Positions 12,406-60,300 of a stretch of 64,000 nucleotides of DNA are shown here, piece after piece. Source of the stretch: Haliotis rubra (lineage: Eukaryota); contig NW_025765054.1 in NCBI RefSeq assembly GCF_003918875.1, positions 62,001-126,000 of the forward strand, written 5' to 3'. Position 1 is the first letter of the stretch, and each line of letters begins with the position of its first letter. The notes beneath the pieces were generated by a model. It was not told the DNA's origin and ran no database searches. It was given only the letters and a program-made list of their open reading frames with translations. The position numbers were made by a program, and so were the translations under genes.

Positions 12406-14943
12406 TCATATCATTATGTCGGATGGGACAAGTCTGGCAGTAACAAGAGCTACCGAAGTCACATAACCGTTCTCCTGGTTGGAGAAGTTAACCTGGACCT
12501 GGATAGCAGTAGAGTTCAACAAGTTAGGAGGGACCTCAAACTCCCAAACGTCCATGTTGGTATACATGTCACTGTTGTGTCTATCTGAGTCATACAGCTT
12601 GAAGAAGGAGTCAAGAGTTTGGCCGTTGAGGGTAACAGATTTCACATCGTTGGTTTCAGTAGTGAGCCAACTGGTTGAAACTCGCAGATTCGCGCTTTGG
12701 AATTCGCCAACCGGAAGTGATATGGTTGTTACAGCGATGCTGTCCTTGATAGGTATAATAACATCTGTTCCGTAATATGTCGTTTCATTGAGAGTAACTT
12801 TAGGTTGTTGGTCTGATGGGATCTTGAATGTAAAGCGACATGTTGCTTCAGGAGGAAGTTCAACCATTCCTTGAGTTTTCCCGATGTCAAAGGGTTCGTT
12901 GAAGGTCATGACCGGGTACCAGTTGTCCTTGATGGTGATACAAGTAGCTTCGCCCATGGTCGGTGTGATCCAGTCGTCTTGGAAAATTAGCTTAACGGTT
13001 TGTGACTGTTGTGAATAGTTGTGAAGGAGAATGACGGTTTCATTCTTCAAAGGACTGGCCATTGCCAGCGGTGACACAGTTCGTTCCTGTCCGTCCGATT
13101 GGCTGGAGGTTCTGATGAAGGAGTACTCTGACGTGAAATCGTTCCAAAACTTGAAAACGTCGACCAAACGTGTGGCATTTCCTTGCTGGGTGAAAAGTGA
13201 CCAGTTGAGACTGTCATGTCCTTGACGTTGCTCGTTGGCTAACAAAAACACCACTGTTCTATCAATGTATTCTCTGAGACCAAGTTGGGTGAATCGGTGG
13301 CCATTGATGCAATATATTGTTGAAAAATCGACTATACCCGATGGAGCATCTTTGCTAATACCTTTTACTCCCCCGCGACCATATTCACTGATAATGATGG
13401 GAATAGATCTTCCCTTCTTTCGATGGACATAGCTTTCAAGGAGGTCGACAAATGCTACCAAACGGGCTTCATTATTTCCAGTGAATTTATGGGTTTTCCC
13501 CGAAACAACTAGAGAGTTGTATGAATGAAAGGAAAATACGTCTAATTGATCTAATGCGATGTCCAGAAACTGTACCAGTTTTGGCCAGAAGGAGAAGTTA
13601 TTTCTGTCTACGTCTGTATTATATCCTGTCATTGTTGGACCCGCCACTTTGATGTTAAATCTGGAATGGAGTTTCTCAGCAACTGCTTTATGGTAGATGC
13701 TGACAGTGGTGCTGAAGTTCATGATGTCCCCTTTAACATCTGGTTCATTGACGACTTCAAAGTAGGGCGGTATCTGACCTTGGGTGTAGTCATAAACTCC
13801 TTGCACCATTAACATAATGAACTCTGCAGCAGCATCTATGGTGTTTGGGAAATGACCTTGATGTTCTGACTGGTTCATCCAGTTGGGCCAGTTAAGAGCT
13901 GAAACATATGAATGAACAACACATTGATGCATACTGTTGGTGGGATGTTCTCCTTTTCATCGAAATGTACTCAGACATTTAATTACGGATATGGATACCT
14001 CCCAGACACTTACATTTATATCACATATAAGTACTGGTAAAGTTCTTGTTTTCAGGATGCATTTACATCTTGTCACCATGATCATTTCGTTCTTGTAACC
14101 ACTGTTAATGTTGGCAAGATAGGTGGAGAACAGTTCCTGTTGCTTGGTGACGTTCTTCAGGTAGTTCGGGTCTGGGTAGCCACTACGACTAGGGTCCTGT
14201 GGCCACTACAAAATAAACAATTTCGATGGATGATCGTCACTGACGATTAGATGAAAATAAGTTTGGCAATACTTATATAAATACATCTAATCGTGTTTAA
14301 ACAAAAAGAATGATTATACCAATGATACTTATTCACAAACAATATACACGTACAGATTGTAAAAAATCTTAGTAATTTAATTCAATCTAACTCAGTTCAA
14401 ACACTACTAGATATTCCTGCCACATAACCAACCTTATCCTTACCAGCGGTCATCCTTCAGTTAATGTCTATCCAAGCAAAAATGGATCAATGACTTCCAT
14501 TAATGATATATAGATCGAAACAATATATCAATTCGATAGGGCTTTACAGGGATAAATGGAAATCCAATTAAAAGTACATAGTGTTATGTATGTAAAGTGA
14601 ATACAATATGCAATGGTTATATTGTCATAATACAGCAAATCTGATTCAACATCTCGTTCTACAAATGTTGCATACACACATACATAGGAAAAAAAAGTCT
14701 CACATCTTGAAAGAGATTATCATTTAAATCTCTGTTCATCCAGCGTCCGCTGTCAGTCCGAATACTACGACAACTTGGTATCAGGTATTCATGTTCCAGA
14801 CCATTGTGCTTGCTCCATCTGTCAGGTTCATAGCGAACATTACCTCCCTTTGCCAGCCACTGAGGATAGATTGTCACAGTCGTGTTACTGTATACATTGC
14901 TTATTGATAGACTCAAAATGAAAACAACTGGCGTCCATTCCAT
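12406..14943 (-). CDS. GH86-like beta-porphyranase/beta-agarase paralog copy 2, intact, 623 aa, secreted
   Basis: Exons 14943-14704, 14205-14067, 13898-12406 (1872 nt, phases 0 and 1, GT-AG). Signal peptide MEWTPVVFILSLSISNVYS; acid/base NEP (E 13746-13744); nucleophile ISEYG (E 13386-13384). Confidence 0.9.
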
Positions 14944-15594
14944 TTTCCCTGATTTGTAGCATTTCCCAACAAAGGTCATAACTAGTTCAGTTGCAAGCGA
15001 CAGTGTCTTATAGCTCAGACGTTTGCCGCTGATAAGGTATCGCTGACCTTAATACACATACACCACACTGTTAGAACGTGATCAGTTACGCAGGGTCAAC
15101 TGTTATTTAGGTCTATCGGAAGGGTTGGCTATTCCATATCTGATTATACATGAATATGCATTGCATGGTTTACGGTTAAGCACTATTTTCGTCTGCCCAC
15201 CAACATGTCCCTCACCAAACAACCTACAAGTACATGGATAGATTACGGCGGTTATACTGACGGAAGTTACACGTATGTCTTTAAAGATTGATTTAGCGAT
15301 GATGGGTTCTACTCATTACTTGCGTAAAAAACAGAAATAGGTCTCAATACATGCAAACATACTTCACAAGCATAGAAACCAATATTCAGGCGAACAAGAT
15401 CAAAATATCCTCTGCTTTCCGAATAAAATTCAGCAAGAAAAATATGTCTACGTTGATTCAATGTTTTGTCAAAGCAGATTAAGGAGCTGACCGTTACATA
15501 ATTTAAATATATTATCAGCTTTCGTTGACGATATTATATCGCCACGAATCTTGATCCGAACATCGAACACCGAAGAAAAGCCTTCTGTCCACAG

Positions 15595-20751: not shown

Positions 20752-23586
20752 TCATATCATTATGTCGGATGGGACAAGTCTGGCAGCGACAAGAGCTACC
20801 GAAGTCACATAACCGTTCTCCTGGTCGGAGAAGTTAACCTGGACCTGGATAGAAGTAGAGTTCAACAAGGTGGGAGGGACCTCAAATTCCCAAACATCCA
20901 TGTTGGTATACATGTCACTGTTGTGTCTGTCTGAGTCATACAGCTTGAAGAAGGAGTCAAGAGTTTGGTTGTCGAGGGTTACAGATTTCACATCGTTGGT
21001 TTCAGTAGTGAGCCAACTGGTTGAAACTCGCAGATTTGCGCTTTGGATTTCGCCAACCGGAAGTGATATGGTTGTTACAGCGATGCTGTCCTTGATAGGT
21101 ATAATAACATCTGTTCCGTAATATGTCGTTTCATTGAGAGTAACTTTAGGTTGTTGGTCTGATGGGATCTTGAATGTAAAGCGACATGTTGCTTCAGGAG
21201 GAAGTTCAACCATTCCTTGAGTTTTCCCGATGTCAAAGGGTTCGTTGAAGGTCATGACCGGGTACCAGTTGTCCTTGATGGTGATACAAGTAGCTTCGCC
21301 CATGGTCGGTGTGATCCAGTCGTCTTGGAAAATTAGCTTAACGGTTTGTGACTGTTGTGAATAGCTGTGAAGGAGAATGACGGTTTCATTCTTCAAAGGA
21401 CTGGCCATTGCTAGCGGTGACACAGTTCGTTCCTGTCTGTCCGATTGGCTGGAAGTTCTGATGAAAGAGTACTCTGACGTGAAATTGTTCCAAAACTTGA
21501 AAACGTCGACCAAACGTGTGGCGTTCTTGCTGAGTGAAAAGTGACCAGTTGAGACTGTCATGTCCTGGAAGTTGCTCGTTGGCTAACAAAAACACCACTG
21601 TTCTATCAATGTATTCTCTGAGATCAAGTTGGGTGAATCGGTGGCCATTGATGCAATATATTGTTGAAAAATCGACTATACCCGATGGAGCATCTTTGCT
21701 AATACCTTTTACTCCCCCCGCGACCATATTCACTGATAATGATGGGAATAGATTTTCCCTTCTTTCGATGGACATAGCTTTCAAGGAGGTCGACAAATGC
21801 TACCAAACGGGCTTCATTATTTCCAGTGAATTTGTGAGTTTTCCCCGAAACCACTACCGAGTTGTATGAATGAAAGGAAAATACGTCTAACTGATCTAAT
21901 GCGATGTCCAGAAACTGTACCAGTTTTGGCCAGAAGGAGAAGTTATTTCTGTCTACGTCTGTATTATATCCTGTCATTGTTGGACCCGCCACTTTGATGT
22001 TAAATCTGGAATGGAGTTTCTCAGCAACTGCTTTATGGTAGATGCCGACAGTGGTGCTGAAATTCAAAACCTGATTCTCAGCCTCTGGTTCATTGATGAC
22101 CTCAAAGTAGGGCGGTATCTGACCTTGTGTGTAGTCATAAACTCCTTGCACCATTAACATAATGAACTCTGCAGCAGCATCGACGTTGTTTGGGAAAAGA
22201 CCTTGATGTTCTGACTGATTTATCCAGTTTGGCCAGCTACGAGCTGGAAGATATGAATGAACAACACATGAATGCATACTGTTGCAGTGATGTTCTCCTT
22301 TTCATAGAAATATGCCAATCCATTTAAATTAGATCGTTTTATTTCAAGACACTTGTCTCTTTTGTTGAATGTAAGAATTTAGACAAATGTTCACTAGAAC
22401 CATTCTCAAACTTGTTTACAGAATTCTGTGAAGCTAAACTTACTTTACAGTCGCAATAAATGCACCATAGATATTAACATACATAAATTTTACATTTGAT
22501 TGTGAAATAACATCGAGTTCGAAATGTTGTTTCCATGTACATCTTTGAATGGAAGCATATTGTAATTGCATAACTTTAACAGAAAGAGAAAACCCCGGCG
22601 TCTAAGTTTCTAGAATTTGTATTGCAGAAATGCGTTGCTCAGGGTTATGTGGGTCTAATTCCCACATTCGCTCGTAGAATGTTCTTTCTTTTGTCAGTTC
22701 AATACACATATTCGTATTTGTAAACACCAAGCATCAGTCAATAGGCTACGCCATATATATTACATATAAGTTCTGCTAATGACTTGTTTTCAGGGTGCAC
22801 TTACATTTTGTCTCCATGATCATTTCGTTCTTGTAACCACTTTTAATGTTTGCAACATACGAGGAGAATAGTTCCTGCTGCCTGGTGACATTCTTCAGCT
22901 AGTTCGGGTCTGGGTAGCCACTACGGTTAGGGTCCTGTGGCCACTACAACATAAACAATTTCCAGTTAGTGTTTATATAGATGATTACGTGTCACTAACA
23001 ATTAGGTAAAATTTTATTATTGGTAATACTAGTATAAATAATAAATTAACCGTTTTTAAACAAAATTGTCTGAATGACAAAAGATTCTCATTATGTTACT
23101 TATTCACAAACAATCTAGTTTAATTCAAACAACACTACACTACCTAATAACCAGCCCTGATATGATCAGTGACTATCCCACAGTTGATGACTATTCAAGT
23201 AACAAAGAAACGATGCATTTCATTGCCAATATCTAGATCTAAACGGGCAATGGTCATGTTTTGTTCTGGTTAGATACAGCAAATCTGATTCAACATCTCG
23301 TTCTGCGAATGTTGCATACACGCATACATAGGAACAAAAGTCTCACATCTTGAAAGAGATTATCATTTAAATCTCTGTTCAACCAGCGTCCGCTGTCAGT
23401 CCGAATACTACGACAACTTGGTATCAGGGATTCATGTTCCAGACCATTGTGCTTGCTCCATCTGTCAGGTTCATAGCGAAGATTACCTCCCTTTGCCAGC
23501 CACTGAGGATAGATTGTCACAGTCGTGTTACTGTATACATTGATGATTGAAAGGCTCAAAATGAAAACAACTGGCGTCCATTCCAT
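20752..23586 (-). pseudogene. GH86-like paralog copy 3, pseudogene
   Basis: Exons 23586-23347, 22943-22805, 22243-20752. In-frame TAG in exon 2 (22901-22899; TAC in copies 1, 2, 4, 5), +1 in a G run near 21715, 2-nt deletion near 21525. Confidence 0.85.
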
Positions 23587-26490
23587 TTTGCCTGATTTGT
23601 AGCATTTCCCAACAAAGGTCATAACTCGTTCAGTTGGAAGAGGCTGTGTCTTATAGCTCAGACGTTTGCCGCTGATAAGGTATCGTTGACCTTAATACAG
23701 CTACACCACACTGTTGGAACGTGATCAGTTTGTTATTTCTCCTTTGACATATAGAGATAGATTGAAAGATATATAGATAACAATATACATGTAGTTCAAC
23801 AAGAGAACGTGAACAAACATTATCTCAATGCCTCAACGCGTGAATAGTATTGTCAAAAATCAAAACTAATTTTGAAACGTGAAACGATTAAAAACTGCAG
23901 TATCCCAGCTATATGGTTGGGTCTGATGTGAATACAGTGATTGAGGTCATGAGTTTGAAGATCAGGGTGTTACGGCGGTAAACCACTTCGCCTTCTTTTT
24001 CGAATGATTGGTGGCCGGTGCTGAAGTGGACCTTTGTGATTGAATTGGGCTGAATTTCATCTAAGAACCAGACGTAGATTCAGTGACTGGGCCAATAGTT
24101 TTAAGGGCGGAAGCTAAAGAAATAGTTTTTTTGTGACTTGATCCTAATGACTTCAGTCTGACATGCAGAAGTGACACTGCTACAGAGTGGAATATGTGAT
24201 AGACTGATTGAAGTTGAAGACTGATTTGTCACTCACATTTGGGATCAAGGTGTAAAATCAGGATCTGGATGAAGTAGCATGTGGGCCTTTACAGTTTGCG
24301 CATCAGCCCGATTCAATCACAAACGTCCACTTCAGCACCGGCCACCAATCATTCGAAAAAGAGTTGAGTTGAGTTGGGCTTTACGTCACATCGAGATTAA
24401 GTCTGCATTAATAAACATATATTCGAAAAAAAAGAAAGGGAGAGATGCATATAGTGACAAACATCTTTTGAAACTTTCTTTAACCTCTAGATACGGGGGT
24501 TACTCAGTCCTCACAGGGCATTCACGAGACAGATTTCCCATTGACTCAACTGTCCCTTATAACACTATGGAATTGCAGAGGGCTTAAACTATCTTCTATG
24601 AAATACAATTATTGATACAGGTTTTTTCAGTCATCAGCATTATGTCTCCAAGAGACACATCTGAAGACATCAGACACCCTTAGTTTAAGTTAGTATAAAG
24701 ACCATCACTCATTCTCTCCTCCAGTAGATACAACATCTGTAGGTGCTTCTGTTTTGGTACGGGAGGGTAACATACATGACCCTGTCGCTCTTAACACTAA
24801 TCTTCAAACTGTAGCTGTTCGTCTGACTCTGCTCATTGCGTTGACACTGCGCAGCTTGTGTATCGCTCCCTCTTTTGGTATCCTTGAGGAATTCATTTCT
24901 AGTGAATATCATACTAGGTATTTCAACGATGATTCAACCACCTATTTACATATAGCCACTGTAGCATATTCTGCCCTATAGCTGGCACTCACCGATCCCA
25001 CCTTATATAATGAATTTGAATGAGTAGTCCAAGATGACCTATATGGGAGCGATCACTTCCCTACCATTCTCAAAACGCTTAACCCTGGTGATGATCCATC
25101 TTTATCAAGAAGGAACGTCAACAAGGCTGATTGGTCATTATATGAGACTCTATGCACTTATCACTTACAACAGCAAAGAAACAAAAGAAGCAGAAATCTT
25201 GAAGGAACTATGCTTCCAAAGTAAATTCGCGTACACCCATGTCAAAGGTGTAGAACGAGATACAGAGGATAAACGGCAAAGGTTCAAAATCTACCGTTCA
25301 CCATCTGCAGGATGGTGCCAATTTATTAACTGATGAAGCTGACATTGTCAATAAACTTTGTGAAACACTCGCCAAGCATTCTTTGTCATCAACGTATGTG
25401 CCTGACATCAGTAAATGTTCCACCTTTGTGTCATACTGTCATAATACCTAAGCCTGGCTGGGATCGTACTGATCCTTGTTATTACAGACCAATATATTTA
25501 TGTCTGTAAAACCATGGATAATAAATATTAGTGAGTGAGTAAAGGTTTATAGTCACATCGGCAATATTTCAGCCATATAGTGATTTAAAAAGTTATAATT
25601 TGATAATAAAGGGGCAAAAAAACTTTTCTACGAAGGACACTAAAATAACCATATTATCACAGGTACAAACGTAAAACCAGTAATTAAATCTAAAACATTT
25701 TTATTATTGAGGGCAACACAATATAAAACCAGGCTATATATCACCAACAACTCAAGGTTGATCACCATACTAGGGACCATGGTGACTTATGGTACCTTTG
25801 CTACCTGCATGGCCCCTAGTTGGATTTACACCATCCCTTCAGCCGCTGGCGATTGTAGGAAAATTTAGCCCTAATTTAAAAGAACAAAAATACTAAGTTT
25901 AAATATCTTATAAGCTTAAAGTTAGCTTTGAAAGTTTGGGGACTTACTTACCCTCTCAGGAGGATAGTAATTTTTCGTCACTTCAACCCCCTTTCAGGGT
26001 ACAGCCACTAAAATCTCAGTTACTAATCCAAGTGAGTTAATTTAGTTTTTTTTTACGCCATACTCAGCAATATTACAGCTATATGGAGGCGGTCTGTAAA
26101 TAATCGCCATGGTCCCTAGCATGGTGATCAGCCTGCAGTTGCTGGCGATATATAGCCCATTTTTACATTGTATTGTTCAAAAATAGTTTTTACTTTTAAA
26201 GATATATGCTAGCTAGTTTTAACTCATTTTGTGATAATCTAGTAATTTTACTGTCCTTCATTCCAGGGTTTTATATATTATATGTGAGAACTAGTTTTAG
26301 TCAAGATATGGCTGAAATATTGCCAATGTGACTTTAAATTTTAACTCACTCACTTACTATGTATAACAATTAAATGTTCTCGTCACGATATGGCTGAAAT
26401 ATTGCCGATGTGACGATAAATTATAACTCGCTCACTAACTCACTCACTGTAAATAATCGAGTCTGGACCAGACAATCCAGTGATTAACAC

Positions 26491-31661: not shown

Positions 31662-34600
31662 TCATTTATTGTCAGATTGGACAAGTTTGGCAGTGACAAG
31701 GGCTACGGAAGTCACATGTCCGTTCCCGTCCTTGTTGGAGAAGTTAACTTGGACCGTGATAGAAGTGGAGTTCAGCAAGGTGGAAGCGACAACACACTCC
31801 CATACATCCATGTAGTTGAAGATTTTACTGTTATTTTTATCTGAGTCAAACAGCTTGTAAAAGAAGTTAATAGGTTCGTTGTTGAAGATAACAGATGACA
31901 GACTGTTTGTTTGATTCATTGGAAGACTTGTCGAGATTCGCAGTCTTGCGCTATAGAATTGCTCTTTTGGCAGTGGTACGGTTGTCATAGCGGTGCCGTT
32001 CGTGATGGGAATTATAATATCACTGCCGTAGTACGTAGTTTCATTGAATGTGACTTTAGGTAATTGATCTGAGGTCGTCTTAAATGTATAGCGACAGGTC
32101 GCTTCAGGTAGCAGTTTAACAGTTCCCCCAGTGTTACTGATGTCAAACGGTTCATTCAAAGTGATGACTGGATACCAGTCGTCCTTGATGGTGATGCAGG
32201 TAGCTTCGCCAGTGGTTGGTGTTATCCAATCGTCTTGAAAAATTAGCTTGACTGTCTGTGATTGTGTGGAATAGCTGTGTAAAAGAACGACGGTTTCGTT
32301 ACGCGAGGAACTTGACAGTACTAATGGTGACACAGTTCGTTCCTGTCCGTCACACTGGCTGGCAGTTCTGATGAAGGAATACTCTGACGTGAAGTTGTAC
32401 CAAAATGTGAAGACATCGGCAATCCGTGCGGCCTTTCCTTGGCGGGTGAAAAGTGACCAGTTAAACCCATCAGATCCGCGGTGTTGTTTAGAGGGTAAAA
32501 GAAACACCACCGTTCTGTCAATGTATTCTCTGAGACCAAGTTGGGTGAATCTGTGCGCATTTGCTTGGTATATTGTTGAAAAGTCTACAATGCCAGATGG
32601 AGCACTTTTGCTAATTCCTGATACTCCCCCGCGACCATATTCACTGATAATAAGAGGCATAATCCTTCCCGTCTTTTGATGGATATAGTTTTCAATCAGG
32701 TCGACAAATGCTACCAGACGTGCTTCATTTATGCCAGTAAACTGGTGGGACTTGCCCGTAACATTAAGGGAGTTGTAAGAATGAAACGAAAACACGTCTA
32801 AACGGTCTAGAGTGATGTCCATGAATGCTACCAGTTTTGTCCAGAACGAAAAGTCTTTCCTATCGACCACTGTATTATATCCTGTAATTGTCGGACCAAC
32901 AACTTTGATGTTAAACCTGGAATGGAGTTTATCGGCAACTGATTTGTGGAAGTTGGCGACAGTGTTGGTGAAATTCATGATGTCCCCTTTAACATCTGGT
33001 TCATTGACGACCTCGAAGTATGGCGGTATCTGACCGTTTGTGTAGTCATACACTCCTTGCACCATCAATGTTATAAACTCTGAAGCAGCATCGATGCTGT
33101 TGGGGAATTGACCCTTATGGTCGGACTGGTTCATCCAGGTCGGCCAGTTATGAGCTAAAATCAAAAAACAAAATGGAGCATGAGTGAGTGAGTGAGTTAA
33201 GATTTTAAGTCACATCGGCAATATAGAGGTATAGATTTATAATGATTAAAAATTAAATTATAAACACCTGTCAACAAGGACAATTAAACTACTAGATTAT
33301 CACGGATATATATTTAAAACTAGTAATTAAATCTAAAATTGTTTAATTATAGAGGACGATACAATATAAAAACGGACTATAGATCGCCAACAACTGAAGG
33401 TAGATCACCATACTAGGGACCATGGGGACTTACAGTACCTTTGCTACCTGCGTGGACCCTAGTTGGATTTACATCATCTCTTCAGCCGCTGGCGATTGTA
33501 AGAATGTCAGCCAAAATTCAAATAACAAGAATACTACGTTTAAAAAACCTGGTAAGTTTAAATTGACTTAGAATTGTTTTGGGACTTATACGTACCAAAA
33601 TGGAGCATGAACTATATATACCTTCCTATTAGAATGTACACATGTTTTTCAATTTTGGAGACAAGACTTCTCTTTGTCTTGAAGAAGATACAGGATGGTT
33701 ATCTTTTGTGGGAATATATTTAATTGCTTCTATTCACTTCAGTTGCCATCAAAGCAGCCTCAAGGGAATCAGTCTGCATAAACATGACACCAACAGGTAC
33801 GATACGAGTACACCTCAGCCAGTTTTCGACTACAGATTGCCAAAGGATCAGGATCGAAATTTAAAATCATTACATGTTATATTTCATTAACACGTCACCT
33901 CACATACGTCACCTCTTCACACAGCTGCAATACTGATGAGTGCAGCAACACAATATTACGGTTGCTTGTCTATCCAACGCCTTACCTCTTTGATTCAAAG
34001 AGGGTAGCCTAGTGGTTTAAGCGTTCGCTCGTCACCCCGAAGGCCCGTGTTCGATTCCCCACATGGGTACAATGTGTGAAGCCCAAATTCAGGTGTCCCC
34101 CGTCGTGATATTGCTGGAATATTGCTAAAAGCGGCTTAAAACTCTTCCAATTTGTTAAAACTTGTTTTCATATTATTATTGTGGAAGACATAGAAATATT
34201 AATTCCCTGAGTCATGTTAACAATCTAGTGGTAGCTCTAGTTTCTGAAATCTCTTACCTCTCGCCATCATGATCATATCATTCTCATAACCATGGTTAAT
34301 GTTAGCCAGGTACATAGAAAACATTTCCTGTTGCCTGCTGACGTTCTTCAGGTAGTTGGGATCTGGGTAGCCGCTGTGGTGTGCGTCCTCTGGCCACTAA
34401 AATAGACTTTCACACATGTACACATCTTGCAACCACTGTTAACTTTAGCAAGCTGTTGAATCCTGTTATTGTAGCCGCTATGGTGTACGTCGTCTTGACA
34501 CCAGAATCATTTAGCTATTTGCATAGTATCAGTTTATTGCTTCTTTGACAGATTTTGTCAGTGCGAAAATATGCAGCCACAATACCGTCCAGCTGTGGCT

Positions 34601-40700: not shown

Positions 40701-41012
40701 ATTATTTCTTTGCTGTTCTGGACAATACGTGAGAGCTTCTTTCCCTTCAGTAAGTGAAAACATGAAAATTCACCAAACAAGAAACTAATTAATATTAATA
40801 AAGGTTGATGTGTTAATGCTCTCACAACTGCAATTACAAGACACTGATTTGCATTGATCTTTTCTAAATATCATAGTTATATTGAGGATATTAATTCAGC
40901 ATTTGGCCATGACCACTCTACCATGAGAGTGTATCCGTATGGGCGTAATTGTGTGCGTGTATGCCTGTGTGTGTGCGTGTATGTCCATGTTTTTGTTCTA
41001 CTTCTTACCCGT

Positions 41013-41052
<40 letters not shown>

Positions 41053-42587
41053 GAGACACACATTTATCTGTGTGCTTGTATGTGTATGTCTTTGTTTTGT
41101 GACACATGTTTTGTGACACACGTACATACATACAAGTTAACTTCCCATTCGTCTGTATTGTTGCTAGGCAAAGACTACCGACGTCACCTTTCCAAACCAT
41201 CTTGACGGGGGAGAGTGAGTGAGTGATTTGAGTTTTACGCCGCACTCAGCAATATTCCAGCTATATGGCGGCGGTCTGTAAATAATCGAGTCTGGACCAG
41301 ACAAGCCAGTGATCAACAGCATGAGCATCGATCTGCGCAATTGGGATACGATGACATGTGTCAACCAAGTTAGCGAGCCTGACCACCCGATCCCGTTAGT
41401 CGCCTCTTACGACAAGCATGGGTTACTCAAGGTCGATATTCTAACCCGGACCTTTAGGGGTAATCTTGACGGGGGAGAATATACGGGAATAAGTTGGAGT
41501 AGAAAACAGGTATGTGTTGCTATTATTTTAGCATTAGCATTGAGACGAGACTCAAATCTGATTTGTAATTTACATGTAGACAATATTTCAAATGGTTTCA
41601 CAACGCCCACCAAGGTTGAAATCTCCTTCTGGGGAATACATTCATATCAATCTGGATTAGAGCTGGCTATGAGGTGAAACCTGCTATGAGGTGAAACAAA
41701 GGCTGAAACACGGGGCAATGTATGGAAACTGGAAGTTCACAGATAAAAGTTGCAGAGTTTAACATTGGCCTGACTTCGTACAAATGCGAGGTACGTGTTA
41801 CGAAAGCCTGGTGCTGCCACGTATGTAGCATTAAGTGCTTTTAATTGAAATGTATTGTTGTTTCAAGTTTTCTTCACTCTGCTTGAATTATTCTTTTTTT
41901 CCGCTATTTTCTCTGTTCACTTCAATTAGTGTCATGTTACTTCACGGTTCTTTTTTCAAGAATTTGAAATTTCGATTATTTTTACGTTATTTAAGTTTTT
42001 TCTTGCTGCTACGATTATTTTCTCGCTGGGTCGATTATATTCTCATTTCTCATTCGATTAATATTTCGAAGATTTTTATATTATATCAAGTTTCTTTCAC
42101 AAACTCGAACTTTTATATTTTTGAAAGTTGAAACAGTGAGAAAATAACTAAAGCAAACGGAAAATACTCGAAATTTCAAGTTTGTGAAAGGAACGAGTAA
42201 ATAATCATGTTTTACAAAAGATTTAATGTATCTCGAATTTATTTATCAATTTGTAAATCTGTTATTAGAAACTAATATATGTTACAAGTTTGAAACAGTA
42301 TACATGAGCTGGAAAGGAAAAAAATCAAATTAAATAGAAAATCTCACATCTTGGAAGAGTCGGTTACTATAATCTTCATGTATCCAGCGTCCACTGTCAG
42401 TCCCAAGGCTCCGACAGTCGGCCATTAGGGACTCCGGTTCAAGACCATTGTGCTTGTTCCACCTGTCAGTCTCATAGACAACACTACGTCCCTGTGCCAG
42501 CCACTGGGGATAAATCGTTAAAGTTGCGTCACTGTTTACACAATCTATTGCCAGGAACACGGCGAAAAAGACCAGTGTCAATTTCAT
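37765..42587 (-). CDS. GH86-like paralog copy 5, intact, 612 aa, secreted
   Basis: Exons 42587-42348, 40630-40492, 39224-37765 (1839 nt). Signal peptide MKLTLVFFAVFLAIDCVNS; PINEP, FSFHSY and ITEYG; 4-aa in-frame loop deletion (LLASEHDS). Confidence 0.9.
39430..40030. repeat. ~600-bp unclassified repeat, second copy at ~43050-43650
   Basis: Shared gctgatgaaaaaggaatcgtagtcagg...cacgggacactgctctga...gtacctttagagtcattgagggc...ccattttgtactgccattgtgatac. Confidence 0.8.
41014..41046. repeat. (CA)n microsatellite
   Basis: Perfect CA run; another at ~45144-45181. Confidence 0.95.
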
Positions 42588-42644
42588 TGTTGCTTGAATG
42601 GCATGTACCATCATGAAGAGTTGAAGAAATGTATGGAGTTGTGA

Positions 42645-44582: not shown

Positions 44583-44751
44583 NNNNNNNNNNNNNNNNNN
44601 NNNNNNNNNNNNNNNNNNNNNNNNNNNNNNNNNNNNNNNNNNNNNNNNNNNNNNNNNNNNNNNNNNNNNNNNNNNNNNNNNNNNNNNNNNNNNNNNNNNN
44701 NNNNNNNNNNNNNNNNNNNNNNNNNNNNNNNNNNNNNNNNNNNNNNNNNNN
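44583..44751. other. Assembly gap (169 N)
   Basis: Run of n between copies 5 and 6. Confidence 1.
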
Positions 44752-45140: not shown

Positions 45141-45183
<43 letters not shown>

Positions 45184-45410: not shown

Positions 45411-48400
45411 TCAATCTGATTGGATAAGCTTGCCTGTGACAAGAGCAACTGAAGAAACATATCCCGTAGTCATGCTGCTTGAGAAGTGGATCTGTACCTG
45501 GTTAGTCCCCGTTACAAACATGTAGGGAGGAACTACGAACTCCCAAACCTCCCAGTAAGTGGTACGGGCAAACTTGTCGGAGTCATACAGCTTGTGGAAA
45601 GCATCAAGGCGATGGCGGTTAAAGGAAAGGTATGATACACTGTTAGTTTCACTGATTAGCCAACTGGTTGAAACTCTCAGCCTGGCACTCTGATATTGTC
45701 CATTTGGTAGAGATATTACTGTCGAGACTACATTGCCGTTGATTGGTATGAGTGTGTCAGATCCGTAGTATGTGGTTTCGTTCAGTGTGGCACTAGGTAG
45801 CTGGTCTGATGGTGTCTTGAATGTAAAGTGACATGTTGCTTCTGGAGGCATATTTACAATTCCTTGGGTCTTCTGGATGTCGAACGACTCATTGAAGGTG
45901 ATGACTGGATACCAGTTATCCTTGATGGTGATACAAGTAGCTTCCCCCGAGGTTGGTTTGATCCAGTTATTTTCAAAGTCTAGTTTGACAGCCTGCGACT
46001 TCTGAGAATAGCTGTGCAAGAGAATGACTGTTTCGTTATCCAGTGGGCTAGACATTGCTAAGGGAGACACGGTTCGCTCCGCTCCATCATACTGGCTGGT
46101 AGTTCTGATAAAGGAGTATCCCGACATGAATTTGTACCAAAACTTGAAGACGTCGACTATGCGAGTGGCGTTTCCTTGAAGTGTGAAAAGTGACCAATTG
46201 AGACTATCATGTCCTGGGTATTTTTCGTTGGCTAAAAGAAACACCACTGCCCTGTCGATGTATTCCCTAAGACCCAGCTGAGTAAATCTGTGGGCATTTG
46301 CTTGGTATATCGTTGAAAAGTCAACTATTCCTGATGGGGCATATTTGTCAATTCCTGTCACAGGTCCGCGGCCATATTCACTGATAACAAGGGGGATAAT
46401 CTTTCCGGTTTTCTTAGAGGCATAGCTTTCAACAAGGTCGACGAATGCAACCAAGCGTGCCTCATTCATACCAGTAAGATTGTGAGATTTTCCAGAAACA
46501 ACGAGTGAATTGTACGAATGAAACGAAAAGACATCTATATATCCTAAAGTGACGTCCATGAAATCTGCCACTCTTTGCCAGTATGAAAAGTTGTATCTGT
46601 CCGACAATCCAGTTTCTCCATCGAGTGTTGGACCAGACACTTTGATGTTAAATCTGGAATGGAGTTTCTCAGCAACTGATTTATGAAACTTGGCAACGGT
46701 GGTGAAATTCAATATACGCCCTTTACCATCCGGTTCATTTATTGACTCAAAGTAGTGTGGTATTTGTCCCTTTGTGTAGTCATAAACTCCCTGCACCATC
46801 AACATCATGAACTCTGCAGCAGCATCGACATCGTTCGGAAACTGACCTATATGTTCAGACGTGTTTATCCAACTCGGCCAATAAAGACCTGTAAAATATT
46901 ATAATTTTTGTATGAATTTGGCAATGGCTGAAATAAAACGGTTTGACAAGGTCTGGAATAGAAGAATGTTACTGTCAAAGAATTAATGACGCGGAATATA
47001 TCAGTCAGAGAAAGAAAAAATAATGCTGATGAAGAAAACGACCCTTTCAAACATTGACGTGGCTTTTTTGTCGATCGTTCCGGTAAGATTACATTATATT
47101 TTTTGTGTGGTGTTTAAAGAAAGAACATTCCAGTATTCATTATAATTTGTTGTTTTAATGTAGGTTATCACATTTAGTATTTCTATGAAAGCATTTTACA
47201 ATAATTATTTTGTTTCAAGAATGAACGATAATAACAGCACCAAATGTTTTTAGGTCAGTGAATAAAAATTCAACAAAAACATTAACTATATTTAGGTAAG
47301 TTTCTTTTTAAAATCAACTTTGAGTCACATTGTCGACTGCCTTTTGGTGGAACACTAACGTGATAGGGAGACACGATACATCTGCTTTCTTGACTCATCC
47401 TCATCAAGGATGGGTTTCAATCCTTATAGGGTGGTAAGTGTTATATATGTGACAGGCAAAGATAGTTATTTTGATTAATTGCTTATTGTCTGGCAAATAA
47501 GGTCCCTTATGAGTGAGTGAGTGAGTTGGGCTTTACGCCGCTTTTACCAATATTCCAGCAATAACACGCATTGTGCCCATGTGGGGAATCGAACCCGTGT
47601 TTTCTGCATAAAAAGCGAACGCTTTACCCGCTATGAGTAGGAACAGTTTTTGATGAACTCTACACATCATAACAACTTGCTCAGTAATCGGTGGCCTATA
47701 GTTTCCCCAAAATGTAGGTAAGTGTAAGGGACACGTGAAAGCACTTCTCAACTCTGAATATTTTAAAAATGATGTAAAGAGATTGTATCCTTGCGTATTT
47801 CCGTATCGTTCACATTTGATTTCGGGAAATTTATGGAATATGTTTGTTGTTTATAGCAACCTTCAGCAATATCTAAGCTCCATAACGATGGTCAGCAAAT
47901 AATAGGGTTTTGTTCAGAATAACTAGTGGTTGTAATTATGAGAAATGGCCAGCGTGAAAAACTGATTCGCATCATACGATATAGACCGCCTTGTGGAACA
48001 ACAGGCAAACATAGCAAAATCTCTAAAACGCAAGTTCAGGTTCACATTAAGATATTTTGACTTTACCACAACGTTGGTTATTACTGATGGTTTTATACAT
48101 GATTGGGACGATGACCAACAGTGGGCTGTGTTCTCCCAGAGTGCTCTAATGGGGAAGACCCGTGAAAATCCGGGCTAGAAATCATCTTCAGTAACCCATG
48201 GTTGTCGTAAGAGGCGACAACGGCATCGGGTGGTCAGGCTCGCTGGCTTGGTTGACACATGTCATCGTATCCCAATTACGTAGGTTGATGCACATGCTGT
48301 TGATCACTGGATTGTCTGGTCCAGACTCTATTATTTACAGACCGCCGTCACATAGATGAGTGCGGTGTAAAACTAAACTCACTCACTTACTCTAATGGGG

Positions 48401-50867
48401 AAACATGTTCTTGTCCCAAATAGAAAACTCTTACCTCCTGCCATCATTATCATGTCATTTTCATAGCCACTGTTGATGTTCTCAACGTAACTGGAGAACA
48501 TTTTCTGCTGAAAGGTGACGTTCTTCAGATGGTTGGGATCAGGGTAGCCACTACGGTTTGGGTCCTCTGGCCACTGCAATCAATAATTATCTATATCCTC
48601 AGGGCTAACAGTTTGGTACGTTTTCACTAACCCCTCAAATCACCAACCCTTGACTTCCAGTTTGATTATCTACACTACTATACTGAACCACTATAGAAAT
48701 GTCGTACCGATAGCAGTTTCTTAAAGCACACACTTTAATTCACTGTTCTTAACAATCAACACGGAGGACTGAGTTCAAACTTGGTTAACACATTTTCGGG
48801 AATCACATATAGAGTTAACACAAACAACATCACCAAAAATGGTGCCATTAAGATACCCCAAAGTCAGTATTATGTGTGGCCTCCATGGGCATCGATGAAA
48901 GCGTTGCATCGTCTGTACATGAAATCAATTAGCCGGTTGCTGAAGGCCATAGGCTCTTGTGTCCATACTCTTTGAAATGCCTGATCGAGTCCAGCTGCAA
49001 TTGTCGGCCTTGGTTGGAGGTCATTCAGTCTTCTTTGAAGCTCGTCCCAAAGGTGTTCTATTGGACTTAAAATCCGGACTGAGTGCAGGCTATTGCAGGG
49101 TGTTTTTAGGCCATGTTGTTTTGGAAGTCAAATTTTGCTCTGGCAGTGTGGGCACGAGCGTTGTCTTGCTGCAAGTTGTGAATTCTGTAACGTACAAAAT
49201 TTGGTACAACGTGGGGTGTGATGACTTGGTCAATATAGCGAGCAGCTGTCACGTCATTTCTTCATCCTGGACCAAGATTCTGGAACTCAACGGTGTCAAC
49301 TAACTGGTTCAGACCGAATGCACCCCACACCGTGATGCTTGGACCACACCAAGTGTCTCTTTCAATGGTACACTCATTGGAAAACAGTTCCCCATGCCTT
49401 CACCATATCACTCTGCCATCGACTGTCGAAACACAACATCGGCTTTCATGAGATAAAAGCACAGTTCTCCATTGTCGATAACGCCAATGTTAATGCTGAG
49501 TTGTCCATTGCAGTCGGTTTGGGCGGTAATGAGCTGTGAGGACAGGACCACGATACGGTCTTTGACAGCAGAGATTTTTTCTGCGCAAACGTCGACGCAC
49601 TGTATCGGCACTGATGGGTCTGTTGTGAGTCCCAATGGTCTGGCATACTGTTTCAATCGCTCTGGGCGATCTTGCAGATGGTTGCGCACAATCTGTCGGT
49701 CTTGACTTTGTGATGTTACTGGAGGTCGCCCACTGCGTGGACGGTCTTGGATGCTGTTAGTCACCTGATACCTCTCCTGCAGTCGGTACATTGTCCTTAC
49801 ATGAACATTAAAATGATTGGCTCCCCTCCGTGCAGCCTGAACAACTTGCAATCGTCCAAAGACTTGGTTCCTCGGATCTCTCGTAAGTCGTGGCATGGTG
49901 ATTGTATCAAAACAAAATTGATTTCAGGCGAGTTTGGGACTTGCTTTCATATATAAGCATCTTTCCAGTAATAAACCAGCCTCGACGCTGAGATGGAAAT
50001 ATGAGCAGCCTGACGGCAAGTACTGTTACTTATTATGGAGTTTTCGAGAACTCAATACTAAAGAACCAAGTGACATGAAAAGAACATCTTCATAATTTCT
50101 CTTTGATGGAGGGCGGTGGGGTAGCCTAGTGTTTAAAGCGTTCGCTCGTCACGCCGAAGGCCCGGGTTCGATTCCCCACATGGGTACAATTTGTGAAGCC
50201 CATTTCTGGTGTGCCCCGCCGTGATATTGCTGGAATATTGCTAAAAGCGGCGTACAACCATACTCAGTCAGTCAGTCTTTGATGGTATTGGTACCCAGTG
50301 GTATTGGATACGAATTACCTCCCTTGCCCATCCCCTTTCCAAGTTGTCCAAGTAAGATAGCCTGGTTTAAAGATCAAGGATGTATGCAAGGTAATTTGCG
50401 AAGAACTACGGGAATGGAACCAGGGGCTAGTGTAGGTTTAATGTTAACAGCAAAGTATCACCTCATTCGTGTAGGACACCGTATTCCTGTAAGGGTTACA
50501 CTAAATCAATGTTTCCATTACATTGTCGCCATCACTGGCGTTTGATAATGTCAAATTTGTTTTTAACAGTGCTAGTGACAGCTTTCAGTGGCATTGATAT
50601 TTAGTATTATACGTTGGTTGTTCTCACGTCTTGGAAGAGACGATCGTTAAGATCTCTGTTATTCCAGCGCCCAGCGTCAGTCCCAATGCTCCGACATTTG
50701 GGGATGAGAGTTGTCTTATCTAGACCATTGTGCTTGTTCCATCTATTGCTGTCATAGCGAGCGCTTCCTCCCTGTGCCAGCCATTGAGGGTGGATTGTGA
50801 CAGTTGTGTCATTGTATACTCCGCCCACTGTCAAGCACAGAGTGAAAATGACCTGTGTCCACTTCAT
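45411..50867 (-). CDS. GH86-like paralog copy 6, intact, 618 aa, secreted
   Basis: Exons 50867-50628, 48573-48435, 46888-45411 (1857 nt). Signal peptide MKWTQVIFTLCLTVGGVYN; SINEP, FSFHSY and ISEYG. Confidence 0.9.
48712..49960 (-). mobile_element. Tc1/mariner element with frameshifted transposase (49896-48864) in intron 1 of copy 6
   Basis: MPRLTR...DRPRSGRP; QQDNARAH and SPDLSPIEHLW motifs; ends GGHT.Y*. Same family as 55756-57228. Confidence 0.85.
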
Positions 50868-55755: not shown

Positions 55756-57228
55756 TACTGAACCGCAAACGAAACGTCACCTCCAAAACCAAATTTTGTT
55801 CTCACAAGGTGGTGTTTTTATTATGATTGTACCGTTTTGTTAAAGTGTGTTTCACTCCAAATGGATAGTCATTACCAACATTAGTGTGTTTTCTGATGAA
55901 AAGGCATATCGACTAAACGCACCTAAAAAGGCAGACGTGATAAAAGGTACCTTATGACATTCGTGAAAATGAACATGCACGTACATATCGTGACAACCCT
56001 ACCAATGAAAGCGAGTCTCAAACTCGCCTGAAATTATTCTTGTTTGACACAACCACCATGCCAGGAGTTACGAGAGATCAGGGGAACCAAGCCTCGGGAC
56101 GATTGCAAGTTTGCCAGAATGCAGGGAAGGTAGCCAATCATTTTAATGTTCATGTTGGGACAATCTACCGACTGAATGCGGTTTCAGGCCACTAACAGCA
56201 TCCAAGACCTTCAGTAACATCACAAAGTCAAGACCGACAGATTGTACGCAACCATCAGCAGGATCGCTTCACCAGAAGGACGGAAGCAGCACGCCAGACC
56301 ATTGGGACTCACAACAGACCCATTAGTGCAGTAACAGTGCGTCGACGTTTGCGCGGAAGAAACCTGTGCTGTCGCAGACCATATCGTGATCCTGTCCTCG
56401 CCGCTCGTCACTGCCCAAACCGACTGCAATGGGCGACTCAGCATCGAAATTGGCGTTATTGACAATGGAGAACTGTGATAAAATTCGATATTGTGTTTCG
56501 ACAGCCGATGGCATAGTGAGAGTATGGCGAAGGCGTGGGGAACGGTTTTCCAAAGAGTGTATTGTTGAAAGAGACTCGTGGGGTGGTCCAAGCATCACTG
56601 TGTGGGGTCGATCGGCCTGAACCAGAGAGTTGGCCCCATGTTCGGTCCAGGACGAGGAAATAGCGTGACAGCTGCTCACTATATTGATCAAGTCATAAGA
56701 CCCCACGTTGTACCACATGTTGGACGTCACAGAAAACACATCTTCGAGCACGATAACGCTCGTGGCCACACTGCCAGAGCAACATTGGACTTCGTAAGAC
56801 AAAATGGCATCCAAACCCTACTACTGCCTGCACTCAGTCCGGATTTAAGTAAAAAAGAACACCTTTGGGACGAAATTCAAAGAAGACTGAATGACCTCCA
56901 ACCATGGCCGACAACTGCGGCTAGACTCAATCAGACATTTTGCTCAGTATGGACCCCAGTGCCTATGGCCTTCAGCAAGCGGCTAATTCATTCCATGTAC
57001 AGACGATGCAACGCCGTCATCGATGCCCATGGAGGCCACACACGATACTGACTTTGAGGTATCATAATGGTACCATTTTGGTGATTTTGTTTGTGTGAAT
57101 ACTAACCATAGGTAACCATAATTGTCAAGTTTGAACTCAATCCTCCGTTTTGATTGTAAATTAGAGCGAATGAAAGTGTGTGCTTTAAGAAACCAATATC
57201 AGTATGGCGTTTCTTTTGCTGTTCAGCA
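55756..57228 (+). mobile_element. Near full-length Tc1/mariner element with pseudogenised transposase (56058-57051)
   Basis: Imperfect TIRs tactgaaccgcaaacgaaacgtca / tggcgtttcttttgctgttcagca flanked by TA; FEHDNARGH, SPDLSKKEHLW and GGHTRY*. Confidence 0.88.
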
Positions 57229-57397
57229 TATTAGTTTAGTAACACGATTCAATCCAAAGAGAACCATTGCAGGTGTTGCAATTTTGTTTTATTACCTGGG
57301 TAACAACGACATAACACTCATTAATGGAACAAATTTAATCATATCAAATTTGAGGTATTTCTCAGCATCCATATCATTATTAAGACTTCAAATCAGA

Positions 57398-60300
57398 TTA
57401 CACAAGTTTGCCTGTGACAAGGGCAACTGACGAAACATATCCCACTGCCATGTTGTTTGAGAAATGAACCTGTACCCGGTTAGCCCCTGTGACGAACAGG
57501 GAGGTAGGGACTGCAAACTCCCAAACCTCCCAGTAAGTGGTACGGGCAAACTTGTCCGAGTCATACAGCTTGTGGAATGAATGTAGGCGATGGTGGTTGA
57601 AAGCAAGGTATGACACACTGTTAGTTTCACTGATCGGCCAACTGGTTGAAACTCTCAGCCTGGCACTTTGATATTGACCATTTGGTAGAGATATTACTGT
57701 CGAGACTACATTGCTTTTGATTGGTATGAGTGTATCAGATCCGTAGTATGTGGTTTCGTCGAGTGTGGTACTGGGTAGTTGGTCTGATGGTGTCTTGAAT
57801 GTAAAGTGGCACGTTGCTTCTGGAGGAAGGCTTACAATTCCTTGGGTCTTCTGAATGTCGAAGGGTTCGTTGAAGGTGATAACTGGATACCAGTCATCCT
57901 TGATGGTGATACAAGTAGCTTCTCCCGAGGTTGGTTTCATCCAGTTATTTTCAAAGTCTAGTTTGACAGCCTGCGACTTCTGAGAATAGCTGTGCAAGAG
58001 AATGACTGTTTCGTTATCCAGTGGGCTTGCCATTGCTAAGGGAGACACGGTTCGCTCCGCTCCATCATACAGGCTGGTAGTTCTGATAAAGGAGTATCCC
58101 GACATGAATTTGTACCAAAACTTGAAGACGTCGACCATACGAGTGGCATTGCCTTGAAGTGTGAAAAGTGACCAATTGAGACTATCATGTCCTGGATATT
58201 TTTCGTTGGCTATAAGAAACACCACTGTTCTGTCGATGTATTCCCTGAGACCAAGTTGGGTAAATCTGTGGGCATTGGAGTGGTATATCGTTGAAAAGTC
58301 AACTATACCTGATGGAGCATATTTGTCAACTCCTGTGACCTTATCGCGACCATATTCACTGATAACAAGAGGAATAATCTTTCCGGTCTTCTGGGAGGCA
58401 TAGTTTTCAACAAGGTCGACAAATGCTACGAGACGTGCTTCATTCATTCCAGTTAGATTGTGAGATTTCCCCGATACGATAAGGGAGTTGTATGAATGGA
58501 ATGAAAATACATCTATATATCCTAAATTGGTGTCCATGAAATTTGCCACATTTTGCTAATACGAAAAGTTGTTTCGATCCGACAATCCAGTTTCTCCGTC
58601 GAGTGTTGGACCAGACACTTTGATGTTAAATCTGGAATGGAGTTTCTCAGCAACTGATTTGTGAAACTTGGCAACGGTGGTGAAGTTCATTATACGCCCT
58701 TTACCATCCGGTTCATTTATAGGCTCAAGATAGTGTGGTATTTGTCCCTTTGTGTAGTCATAAACTCCCTGCACCATCAACATCATGAACTCTGCAGCAG
58801 CATCGACATCGTTCGGAAACTGACCTATATGCTCAGACGTGTTTATCCAACTCGGCCAATAAAGACCTGTAAATAACATGAGAGCAAACCCGTTATACTG
58901 ATGATATTTTTAATGATTCTAATTTCCAATTTTATTGAAACGAAGGGTTTCGAAAGCATTTGAAACATCATAGCGTATGAGGCATGGAGTGAGGGGAAAA
59001 TATAGTCCCATCAGAATTCGTACAGCCACATCGTCACTATCAAATGTTTTACTTCTAAACTATGTAGAAATCTGTGAAGACGAGACATAATCATAACTAG
59101 ATATCACAGACATATTCAGAACTGGTGTTTAACCAAAATGACATCACTTAAACTAGGGACATATTGTATTTATGTATTGTACTGTAACATTGTATTTATG
59201 TATTGTATTGTAAGATTGTATTGTATTTATGTATTGTATTGTAACATGTATTTAGGTATTGTATTGTAACGTTGTATTTATGTTTTATAACATGCCGTAT
59301 TTATATATTGTAACATTGTATGTATGTATTGCAATTTAACATTGTACGTATGAGTGAGTGAGTTTAGTTTTACACCGCACTCAGCAATATTCCAGCTATA
59401 TAGCGGCGGTCTGTAAATAATCGAGTCTGGGCCAGACAATCCAGTGATCAACAGCATGAGCATAAATCTGCGCAATTGGGTACCGATGACATGTGTCAAC
59501 CAAGTCAGCGAGCCTGACCACCCGATCCCGTTAGTAGTCTCTTACGACAAGCATGGGTTGCTGAAGACCAATTCTACCCCCGATCTTCACGGGTCTTGTA
59601 CTTATGTATTATGTTGTACCATATTGTATTTATGTATTGTATTGTAACATATTGTATTTATGTAACATATTGTATTTATGTATTGTATTGTAACATATTG
59701 TATTTATGTATTGTAACATGTTGTTTTATGTATTGTATTGTAACATATTGTATTTATGTATCGTATTGTAACATATTGTATTTATGTATTGTATTGTAAC
59801 ATATTGTATTTATGATACCATAATGAAACCTCGGCATTATTTACACCATCCCTCCACCAGCTGGCTGTTATCGGCGAGTTTCGCATAAATCTTAGACTGT
59901 TGTGAACGAAATAATAATGCCATGGTCAGGGTCATGGTCACCTCAGTCGATTTTTCTAAAGAGCGGGGATTTATTGCTTTCATTTTGTTTATAAAGAAGC
60001 ACAGTCAAAATATAATATCTTGTGAGAGTAAAATATGTATTTCATGACATCATGCTATTGGTGCGTATTCTAAAAATTCGTGTTTTTGACCGTACTTCTC
60101 CTAATATCCTTATTCCTTGAATATGGAATTAAGTATTCGTGGAGTTTGTTTGTTTAACCGGCAGTGGGGTCATGTCGAGCCATTTCACTAATGACCTTGG
60201 CCACAAGATAGAGCAAATGGTCCAAGTGACGCGTGCAAGAAGAATCCCAATGAAAAACCACACTAAACACACGTAACTTGTTTTTTGGTTTGTTTTCACC

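Follow-up and report, generated by a model that had tools for sequence, protein, structure and literature searches.

Glycoside hydrolase family 86 (GH86) is a family of retaining endo-β-galactanases in clan GH-A whose solved members are bacterial β-agarases and one β-porphyranase, and bacteria are usually given the credit for digesting the agar of red seaweeds. All of the solved or characterised GH86 enzymes that we found are bacterial. We analysed 64,000 nucleotides of genomic DNA from the abalone Haliotis rubra (the window) that are a section of a >100 kb tandem array of the abalone's own GH86 genes. The window contains seven GH86 genes (copies 1 to 7, in order of position), all on the minus strand and all paralogs of one another, as well as exon 1 of an eighth copy. 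The array members are predicted to be secreted digestive endo-galactanases, and their agarase or porphyranase activity, which would be cleavage within the chain at the β-1,4 linkages of agarose or porphyran, is predicted from sequence. On balance, we think it probable that this is a birth-and-death array of secreted endo-galactanases with a conserved core, diverging groove loops, and paralogs that differ in substrate fit.

The closest described system is BuGH86, a β-agarase from Bacteroides uniformis NP1 (5TA0, 5TA1, and 5TA5) that gave the best profile match (E=1e-66) and the best match in fold (template-modelling, TM, score 0.80). BuGH86 and the abalone copies have in common a barrel together with a pair of Ig-like domains, the acid/base motif NEP, and a nucleophile at the position of E322. 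By contrast, their identity is only 16-17%, and BuGH86 has a 6-residue insertion directly after NEP, exactly at a loop that varies between the abalone copies (L1 below). BuGH86 is encoded by an intronless gene in a bacterial polysaccharide utilization locus, whereas the abalone genes bear introns and form a large tandem array. BpGH86A, a β-porphyranase from Bacteroides plebeius (4AW7), has a fold TM score of 0.75-0.82 to our model of copy 4 with 16% identity, and the RefSeq name of the abalone proteins, 'beta-porphyranase A-like', follows this enzyme. The bacterial β-agarase Aga86A_Wa (8H97) is the best single-sequence match of copy 2 in the Protein Data Bank (PDB; E=1.5e-9, TM 0.80, 20% identity). 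Among other molluscs, H. asinina, H. rufescens, H. cracherodii, and the chiton Liolophura sinensis have dozens of RefSeq 'beta-porphyranase A-like' genes that follow the same three-exon plan and lie in tandem arrays, with about three chromosomal loci in each species. The presence of GH86 in the chiton suggests that the family is old in molluscs. Within Haliotis, the dozens of GH86 genes in each species form about three sequence groups on different chromosomes, and some are labelled 'funoran endo-beta-hydrolase-like' in RefSeq. The kind of enzyme was already known, with its RefSeq name in place. What is new is the loop-level pattern, an apparently selected site, and cassette-like gene conversion.

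A profile of 70 mollusc sequences matched 5TA1 (E=1.3e-66), 8H97 (6e-65), and 4AW7 (3.6e-41) over profile positions 68-612, and copy 2 as a lone query matched 4AW7 as well as 8H97. The Pfam matches of the window copies were below the curated cut-offs, with 16 bits for PF18206 (Porphyrn_cat_1; cut-off 27) and 23.1 bits for the GH5 Cellulase model (cut-off 23.5), so we took GH86 membership from the PDB profiles and the fold. Many Haliotis relatives have precomputed matches to PF18040 (BPA_C). We made an AlphaFold2 model of copy 4, which matches the RefSeq 'beta-porphyranase A-like' protein P0005 exactly. This model (predicted local distance difference test, pLDDT, 89; predicted TM score 0.89) has strands that alternate with helices up to residue ~380 and is all-β thereafter. 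In a Foldseek search with the model, the top seven matches were chains of the GH86 entries 5TA5, 5TA1, 5TA0, 8H97, and 4AW7 (TM 0.75-0.82), and the runners-up were GH30 and others at TM ~0.4. As judged by alignment and modelled fold, the copies agree with GH86 and clan GH-A in every feature that could be tested.

In the profile alignment, the glutamate of ISEYG aligned with that of 'ISEYS' in BuGH86, which is the nucleophile E322 and is a glutamine in the mutant 5TA0, a structure with agaropentaose at subsites -3 to +2. This residue lies on β7 and is invariant in the 70 sequences (E298 of P0005). The glutamate of NEP aligned with the NEP of BuGH86 (5TA1), Aga86A_Wa (8H97), and BpGH86A (4AW7) and comes after strand 172-174 of the model. 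In the 70 sequences E178 and P179 are invariant and N177 is present in ≥90%. The ISEYG glutamate on β7 is the predicted nucleophile and the NEP glutamate at the end of β4 is the predicted acid/base. In copy 2 these are encoded on the minus strand by codons 13384-13386 and 13744-13746, respectively.

A preliminary description of this DNA had claimed that the paralogs differ most in the loops right after the two catalytic glutamates, that the blocks around these loops are invariant, and that charge-changing differences in the loops make the array an enzyme toolkit. The span that it gave, 13360-58730, leaves out copy 1 (2781-5530). Reading the seven copies, we found all of the loop strings that it quoted to be correct, the blocks NEARLVAFVDL and APSGIVDFSTIY to be invariant in 7/7 copies, and the two glutamates to be the GH86 catalytic pair. 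The loop after NEP (L1) reads DVKGDIMNF in copies 1, 2, and 4, EAENQVLNF in copy 3, DAKFYIWNF in copy 5, and DGKGRI(L/M)NF in copies 6 and 7. The sequence after EYGR (in L2) is GKVE in copy 1, GGVK in copies 2 and 3, GGVS in copy 4, DIVL in copy 5, GPVT in copy 6, and DKVT in copy 7; the GGVK of copy 3 is readable only across a 1-nt frameshift at exactly that place. A third loop (L3) has two clade-specific states, GPT(M/I)TGYNTxVD and GPTLDGETGLxD, and a fourth (L4) reads LANEQRQGHD, LPSKQHRGSD, LASEHD, or (L/I)ANEKYPGHD, with that of copy 5 being 4 residues shorter. In copy 2, the loops are encoded on the minus strand at 13720-13740 (L1, DVKGDIM), 13348-13377 (L2, RGGVKGISKD), 13606-13641 (L3, GPTMTGYNTDVD), and 13213-13242 (L4, LANEQRQGHD).

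In (β/α)8 glycosidases the loops that follow the β-strands make up the catalytic face. In the copy 4 model, L1 comes directly after strand 172-174 and is the β4α4 loop, L3 comes directly after strand 210-216 (β5α5), L2 is at the end of strand 294-305 (β7α7), and L4 comes directly after strand 338-343 (β8α8). Because the four loops directly follow β-strands 4, 7, 5, and 8, they are on the catalytic face of the modelled barrel. A fifth variable cleft loop, GRW-xxxD-x-xx, is encoded in exon 1 (14704-14740 in copy 2, with an equivalent in each copy) and has the block types NRDLND and HEDYSN, with NNGFSY in other species. As had been noted earlier, charge differs between the loops of the copies. 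Over the exon-1 loop, L1, L2, and L4, the net charge ranges from -3 (copies 3 and 5) to +2 (copy 4), a spread that fits the idea of substrate tuning and ties no loop state to a substrate. N-x-S/T sequons are conserved in every copy right after L1 (NF[ST]) and L4 (NWS), corresponding to N187 and N358 of copy 4; N-glycans would flank the groove loops if these sequons are used.

In bacterial GH86 enzymes the choice between agarose and porphyran is set at subsite -2, where BpGH86A has F77 and S326 and BuGH86 has T82 and a methionine (PMC5849685). A subsite of the porphyranase type would have an aromatic residue in the place of F77 and a small one at the floor of the sulfate pocket, which is S326 in BpGH86A. 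T82 of BuGH86, the counterpart of F77, aligned with the exon-1 loop (GRW-xxRD-x) at the residue that follows 'RD'. Copies 1-3, 6, and 7 have Leu or Ile at this residue, copies 4 and 5 have Tyr, and the subfamily has eight states. The ω (the ratio of nonsynonymous to synonymous substitution rates, dN/dS) of the exon-1 loop is 0.58 against 0.18 for the remainder of exons 1-2, with p=0.029 at the T82-aligned site. S326 aligned either at the start of L4 or two residues before it, since the pairwise alignment placed it at the N/S of 'LANE/LPSK/LASE' and the profile alignment at the second Leu of 'FLL'. Copies 4 and 5 have a Tyr at the F77 position and a Ser in L4, and the match of this Ser to S326 is uncertain by the two-residue difference in register. 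By these alignments one variable loop at least, and probably a second, would fall on positions that are known to recognise the sulfated sugar, with the register being uncertain. The text of PMC5849685 names the sulfate-pocket residue of BuGH86 as M396. Applying the offset of the deposited sequence (SEQRES) that fits T82 and E322 gives Met369 opposite S326 of BpGH86A, and the digits were probably transposed in that text.

Mean pairwise difference among the seven copies is 0.37-0.56 in the four loops, 0.25 in the catalytic part, and 0.31 in the C-terminal part. In a wider set of 36 Haliotis sequences of one subfamily, the four loops hold 8/11 of the most variable catalytic-domain positions (hypergeometric p=8e-7). 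These are positions 303, 184, 181, 183, and 305 (L2 and L1), 221 and 222 (L3), and 351 (L4). The two loops after the glutamates alone hold 5/11 (p=5e-5). The claim that the paralogs differ most in these two loops is thus only partly right, since among the seven copies the C-terminal domain is as variable or more so. The most variable position in the subfamily is residue 108 of P0005, encoded in exon 2 (about 14100 in copy 2), which has 10 states. It lies in the helix ELFS-x-YLAN outside the four loops and has ω≈2.6 (p=0.007, uncorrected).

We estimated ω from a codon alignment of 19 exon-3 sequences, 4 of them from the intact copies of the window and 15 from intact copies elsewhere (H. asinina, H. 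rufescens, H. cracherodii, and other H. rubra loci; L002-L010). For this we used our own Goldman-Yang F3x4 likelihood implementation, which reproduces the M0 log-likelihood (lnL) of IQ-TREE exactly (-13462.77; κ 1.83, ω 0.25). A single global tree for the codon models was dropped on conflict between segments in the approximately unbiased (AU) test, and the models were refitted per segment. The four loops combined had an ω of 0.56 (95% interval 0.48-0.64), threefold that of the remaining barrel in exon 3 (0.18; 0.16-0.18), and the C-terminal domains had an ω of 0.26 (0.26-0.28). Taken separately, L1 had an ω of 0.78 (0.58-1.00), L2 of 0.70 (0.54-0.90), L4 of 0.54 (0.40-0.70), and L3 of 0.30 (0.20-0.42). 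In a fixed effects likelihood (FEL) analysis, 195/499 sites had β<α at p<0.05, which is purifying selection in the core.

On the global tree, model M2a was better than M1a (likelihood ratio test, LRT, 24.1; p=6e-6) and put 0.5% of sites in a class with ω≈5. The fourth residue after NEP (column 54) belonged to this class with a posterior of 1.00 and has the states Gly, Trp, Phe, Tyr, Leu, Pro, Thr, and Asn; in copy 2 it is the Gly codon 13729-13731. With a segment-specific tree the M2a LRT at this site was 20.9 (p=3e-5, a value that assumes the gene-average synonymous rate), and leaving out copy 2, using copy 3 in its place, or using all 22 sequences gave LRTs of 17.9-19.8. The synonymous rate fitted to columns 46-60 was 1.0. 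Within the copy-5 clade, the codon at column 54 changes in single-base steps (TTT, TAT, CTT, CCT, and ACT) and the neighbouring codons are near-invariant. The fourth residue after NEP appears to be driven to change. Selection at column 176 (EYGRGGV-X; Lys codon 13363-13365 in copy 2) is suggestive, with a posterior of 0.86 on the global tree and a per-site p=0.01 on the local tree, where the segment M2a was not significant.

Gene conversion has carried much of the variation between copies. Copies 2 and 3 differ at 56/1473 nt, with 12 of these differences falling within the 21-nt L1 (permutation p≤5e-5). Copies 1 and 4 have an overall identity of 77%, and the longest run without a difference between them, of 43 nt, covers exactly L1 (p=0.003); the DNA of L1 is identical in copies 1, 2, and 4. 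In two other species, the orthologues of the copy-1/2/3 clade have an EAxxQ-type L1 and the copy-4 orthologue has DVKGDIM, so the simplest history is that the ancestor of copies 1 and 2 received its L1 by conversion from the lineage of copy 4. Outside columns ~91-200 of exon 3, copies 6 and 7 are mutual nearest neighbours. Within these columns, copy 6 is nearest to the H. asinina copy L006:12792, which in the same columns leaves its own tandem twin for copy 6. In copies 6 (exon 3 at 45411-46888) and 7 (57398-58866) these columns carry the nucleophile and L2 and have a history that differs from that of the flanks. Two versions of this stretch, 'GPV-GIDKY…QANAHRFTQLG' and 'DIV-GIDKF…HCNAHRFTQLS', recur across species and paralog clades. 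Gene conversion thus shuffles loop-bearing segments, which makes new loop combinations and also wipes out differences. A combinatorial toolkit built by an animal, in which old groove-loop 'cassettes' shared across species are moved between paralogs by short-tract conversion, so that plus- and minus-subsite loops meet in new combinations and are selected for the mixed sulfated and methylated galactans of its red-algal diet, is an account that we think less likely than not.

In the reading that we favour, copies would arise and die in the array, as suggested by the four intact and three broken ones here, and recurrent gene conversion would carry loop-bearing segments from paralog to paralog. Purifying selection would keep the barrel core (ω≈0.18) and leave the βα loops at the rim of the groove far freer (ω 0.5-0.8), with at least one position, the fourth after NEP, apparently driven to switch between its eight residues. 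Paralogs would then differ in which decorated red-algal galactans fit the plus and minus subsites. Such a difference in fit, to agarose-like, porphyran-like, or otherwise sulfated or methylated galactans, is the most likely consequence that we infer, and tuning to different substrates is plausible.

Several points weigh against this reading. We infer contact of the variable residues with substrate only from their position in the barrel, and a tie between loop state and sulfation or methylation is conjecture. A literature search for GH86 in animals or abalone, including an assayed enzyme, returned bacterial work only. The site models were self-written and covered only 19 sequences, and branch lengths in them could vary only through a scale factor. 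Many of the points are also what would be expected from relaxed constraint with gene conversion, in which the loops are flexible surface loops that accept nearly any residue, the selection signal is an artefact of recombination and small sample size, and the array mainly provides dosage while copies are continually gained, homogenised, and lost. Each of the four loops taken whole has ω<1 and that of L3 is ordinary. The pLDDT is lower in the loops and falls below 50 at residues 352-355 of L4. In sliding windows over the seven copies, variability was highest in the C-terminal β-sandwich and in three further stretches of the catalytic domain (columns 127-135, 235-247, and 287-295), and the C-terminal domain is as variable as the loops. 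Trees from four segments of exon 3 mutually reject one another, and the tree of the nucleophile segment is rejected by the other three (ΔlnL 132-240, AU p 3e-14 to 4e-96). This incongruence violates the single-tree model, and short conversion tracts are not fully removable. Much of the difference between copies is whole-segment gene conversion and not point change, the mosaics are plain, and the identical L1 DNA in copies 1, 2, and 4 is due to conversion homogenising as well as diversifying. Finally, 3/7 copies are broken as assembled and 4/7 are intact. When FEL was given a synonymous rate for each site, the p values were nominal (p=0.024 at column 54, 0.021 at 176, and 0.011 at 181) and none of the 499 sites survived Bonferroni correction, although this test is underpowered at 19 sequences, which is a limit and not support.

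The fourth position after NEP weighs against relaxed constraint. Its LRT stays at ≈18-21 when the local tree is used, when copy 2 is left out, and when all 22 sequences are included, its local synonymous rate is not raised, and its codon steps occur among nearly invariant neighbours. In addition, three of the top four FEL sites lie in the 17 of 499 residues that make up L1 and L2 (hand-calculated hypergeometric p ~1e-4). We judge relaxed constraint with conversion to be the main rival explanation, though an unlikely one. For the earlier claims, this means that the expected dN/dS signal was found in the raised ω of the loops and in the M2a result at the fourth residue after NEP and was not found as a loop ω above 1 or as a site that survives per-site-rate correction. 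The interpretation as an enzyme toolkit likewise gains from the catalytic pair, the placement of the loops, and their dN/dS, and loses by the share of conversion, the broken copies, and the weakness of the site tests.

Selection at groove-rim loops with an invariant catalytic machinery would also be expected from antagonistic co-evolution, in which the loops escape proteinaceous or polyphenolic glycosidase inhibitors of the algae, or gut proteases. Plant inhibitors of xylanases and polygalacturonases provide the general basis for such a pattern. No GH86 inhibitor turned up in our literature searches, and we know of none that acts on GH86 enzymes. Moreover, the varying positions include those that set the choice between agarose and porphyran in bacterial GH86 (PMC5849685), and we consider inhibitor escape improbable.

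If the copies do differ in specificity, as the birth-and-death reading with diverging loops suggests, they would form a natural panel of agarases and porphyranases that can be expressed in eukaryotes for seaweed processing. They would also be a clear case of the animal, and not its microbiome, adapting enzymes to algal cell-wall chemistry, and a tractable system for working out which residues of the GH86 loops recognise sulfate and methyl groups. Abalone with a preference for red algae possess dozens of intron-bearing GH86 genes of their own. The copies in the window are not simple duplicates, since the barrel core is conserved, the groove loops diverge, and conversion reshuffles loop segments.

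The window is 100% identical to H. rubra contig QXJH01001145.1 (assembly GCA_003918875.1), with window position 1 at about contig position 62001, and the array runs on along this contig beyond the window. Bacterial contamination as the source of the window was ruled out by the introns, the intergenic transposons, and the identity to the abalone contig. Exon borders were resolved with the H. asinina protein P0001 as a guide. Each copy has three exons with GT-AG borders at conserved positions, and all copies have a signal peptide. Exon 1 encodes ~80 aa including the signal peptide, exon 2 encodes 46 aa and ends in phase 1, and exon 3 is ~1.5 kb long and encodes most of the barrel and the entire C-terminal part. 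The product is a secreted protein of ~620 aa with a (β/α)8 barrel followed by two β-sandwich domains.

On the minus strand, copy 0 consists of exon 1 only (415-672), encoding the signal peptide and N-terminal part; it was found by tblastn with the exon-1 peptide and its remainder is past the left window edge. Copy 1 (2781-5530) has exons at 5291-5530, 4667-4805, and 2781-4269. Copy 2 (12406-14979) has exons at 14704-14943/14979, 14067-14205, and 12406-13898, defined by GT-AG sites and an unbroken translation. Copy 3 is at 20752-23622 and is a pseudogene as assembled. The exons of copy 4 (31662-35488) are at 35249-35488, 34258-34396, and 31662-33154, and those of copy 5 (37765-42614) at 42348-42587/42614, 40492-40630, and 37765-39224. 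Copy 6 (45411-50867) has exons 1 and 2 at 50628-50867 and 48435-48573, and copy 7 (57398-61269) has them at 61000-61248/61269 and 60354-60492, with exon 3 of each as given above.

Translation is unbroken in copies 2, 4, 5, and 6. Copy 2 is contained in RefSeq XP_046543597.1, copy 5 is annotated as a 621-aa gene, and copy 6 matches XP_046543564.1 exactly. Frameshifts or stops interrupt copies 1, 3, and 7 as assembled. Copy 1 has a 1-nt deletion at ~3593/3594, within the codons of L4, and is a truncated 403-aa model in RefSeq. In copy 3, exon 2 contains a TAG stop (22899-22901), the G6 run at 21714-21719 adds 1 nt and shifts the frame within L2 exactly at EYGRG|G, and 2 nt are deleted at ~21523-21526; no gene is called for this copy in the public annotation of this stretch. 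Copy 7 has an in-frame TAG at 58556-58558 where its paralogs have TGG (Trp). The homopolymer lesions could be assembly errors, which is less likely for the stops and the 2-nt deletion.

Errors in assembling or polishing near-identical repeats could in principle produce both the differences between copies and the patches that they share. Three features are of the kind that this would leave: the homopolymer-length lesions in copies 1 and 3, a nearby assembly gap, and a public contig that disagrees at a G-run in copy 2. The gap (N, 44583-44751) is intergenic, lying 660 bp past the stop of copy 6 (45411) and 2 kb ahead of exon 1 of copy 5. It is identical in the GenBank record, the sequence on either side equals that record exactly, and no reading frame crosses it. 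A 139-nt contig from a public DNA run is identical to copy 2 save for one G fewer at 13370-13374, a further point against our reading of the loops; copy 2 also attracts contigs that come from copies 1 and 3, so the shorter contig is not assignable to a copy. The loop states themselves recur in orthologues from three other, independently assembled Haliotis species, copies 4 and 6 are exactly RefSeq proteins, and the sequence on either side of the shared L1 patch has an identity of only 77%, which is too low for reads to have been misplaced. An assembly artefact is thus a very improbable source of the loop pattern.

The G-run in the L2 codons is G5 in copy 2 (13370-13374) and G6 in copy 3 (21714-21719), and it is either an indel hotspot or a place where the assembly is unsure. 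Four public runs matched copy 2 as short contigs without splice joints. Two of these also cover part of intron 1, so the runs look like DNA and are silent on expression and splicing.

Other features of the window include part of a DDE_3 transposase in the interval from copy 7 to copy 6 (56578-57051, plus strand), a transposase-like helix-turn-helix open reading frame within intron 1 of copy 6 (49408-49896, minus strand), and a 297-aa open reading frame upstream of copy 1 (5636-6529, plus strand) without a Pfam match. The orthologous array is adjoined by a gene of the mannanase family GH26 in H. asinina (L009:21279-23776) and by a C-type lectin gene in H. rufescens (L007:22981-26635).

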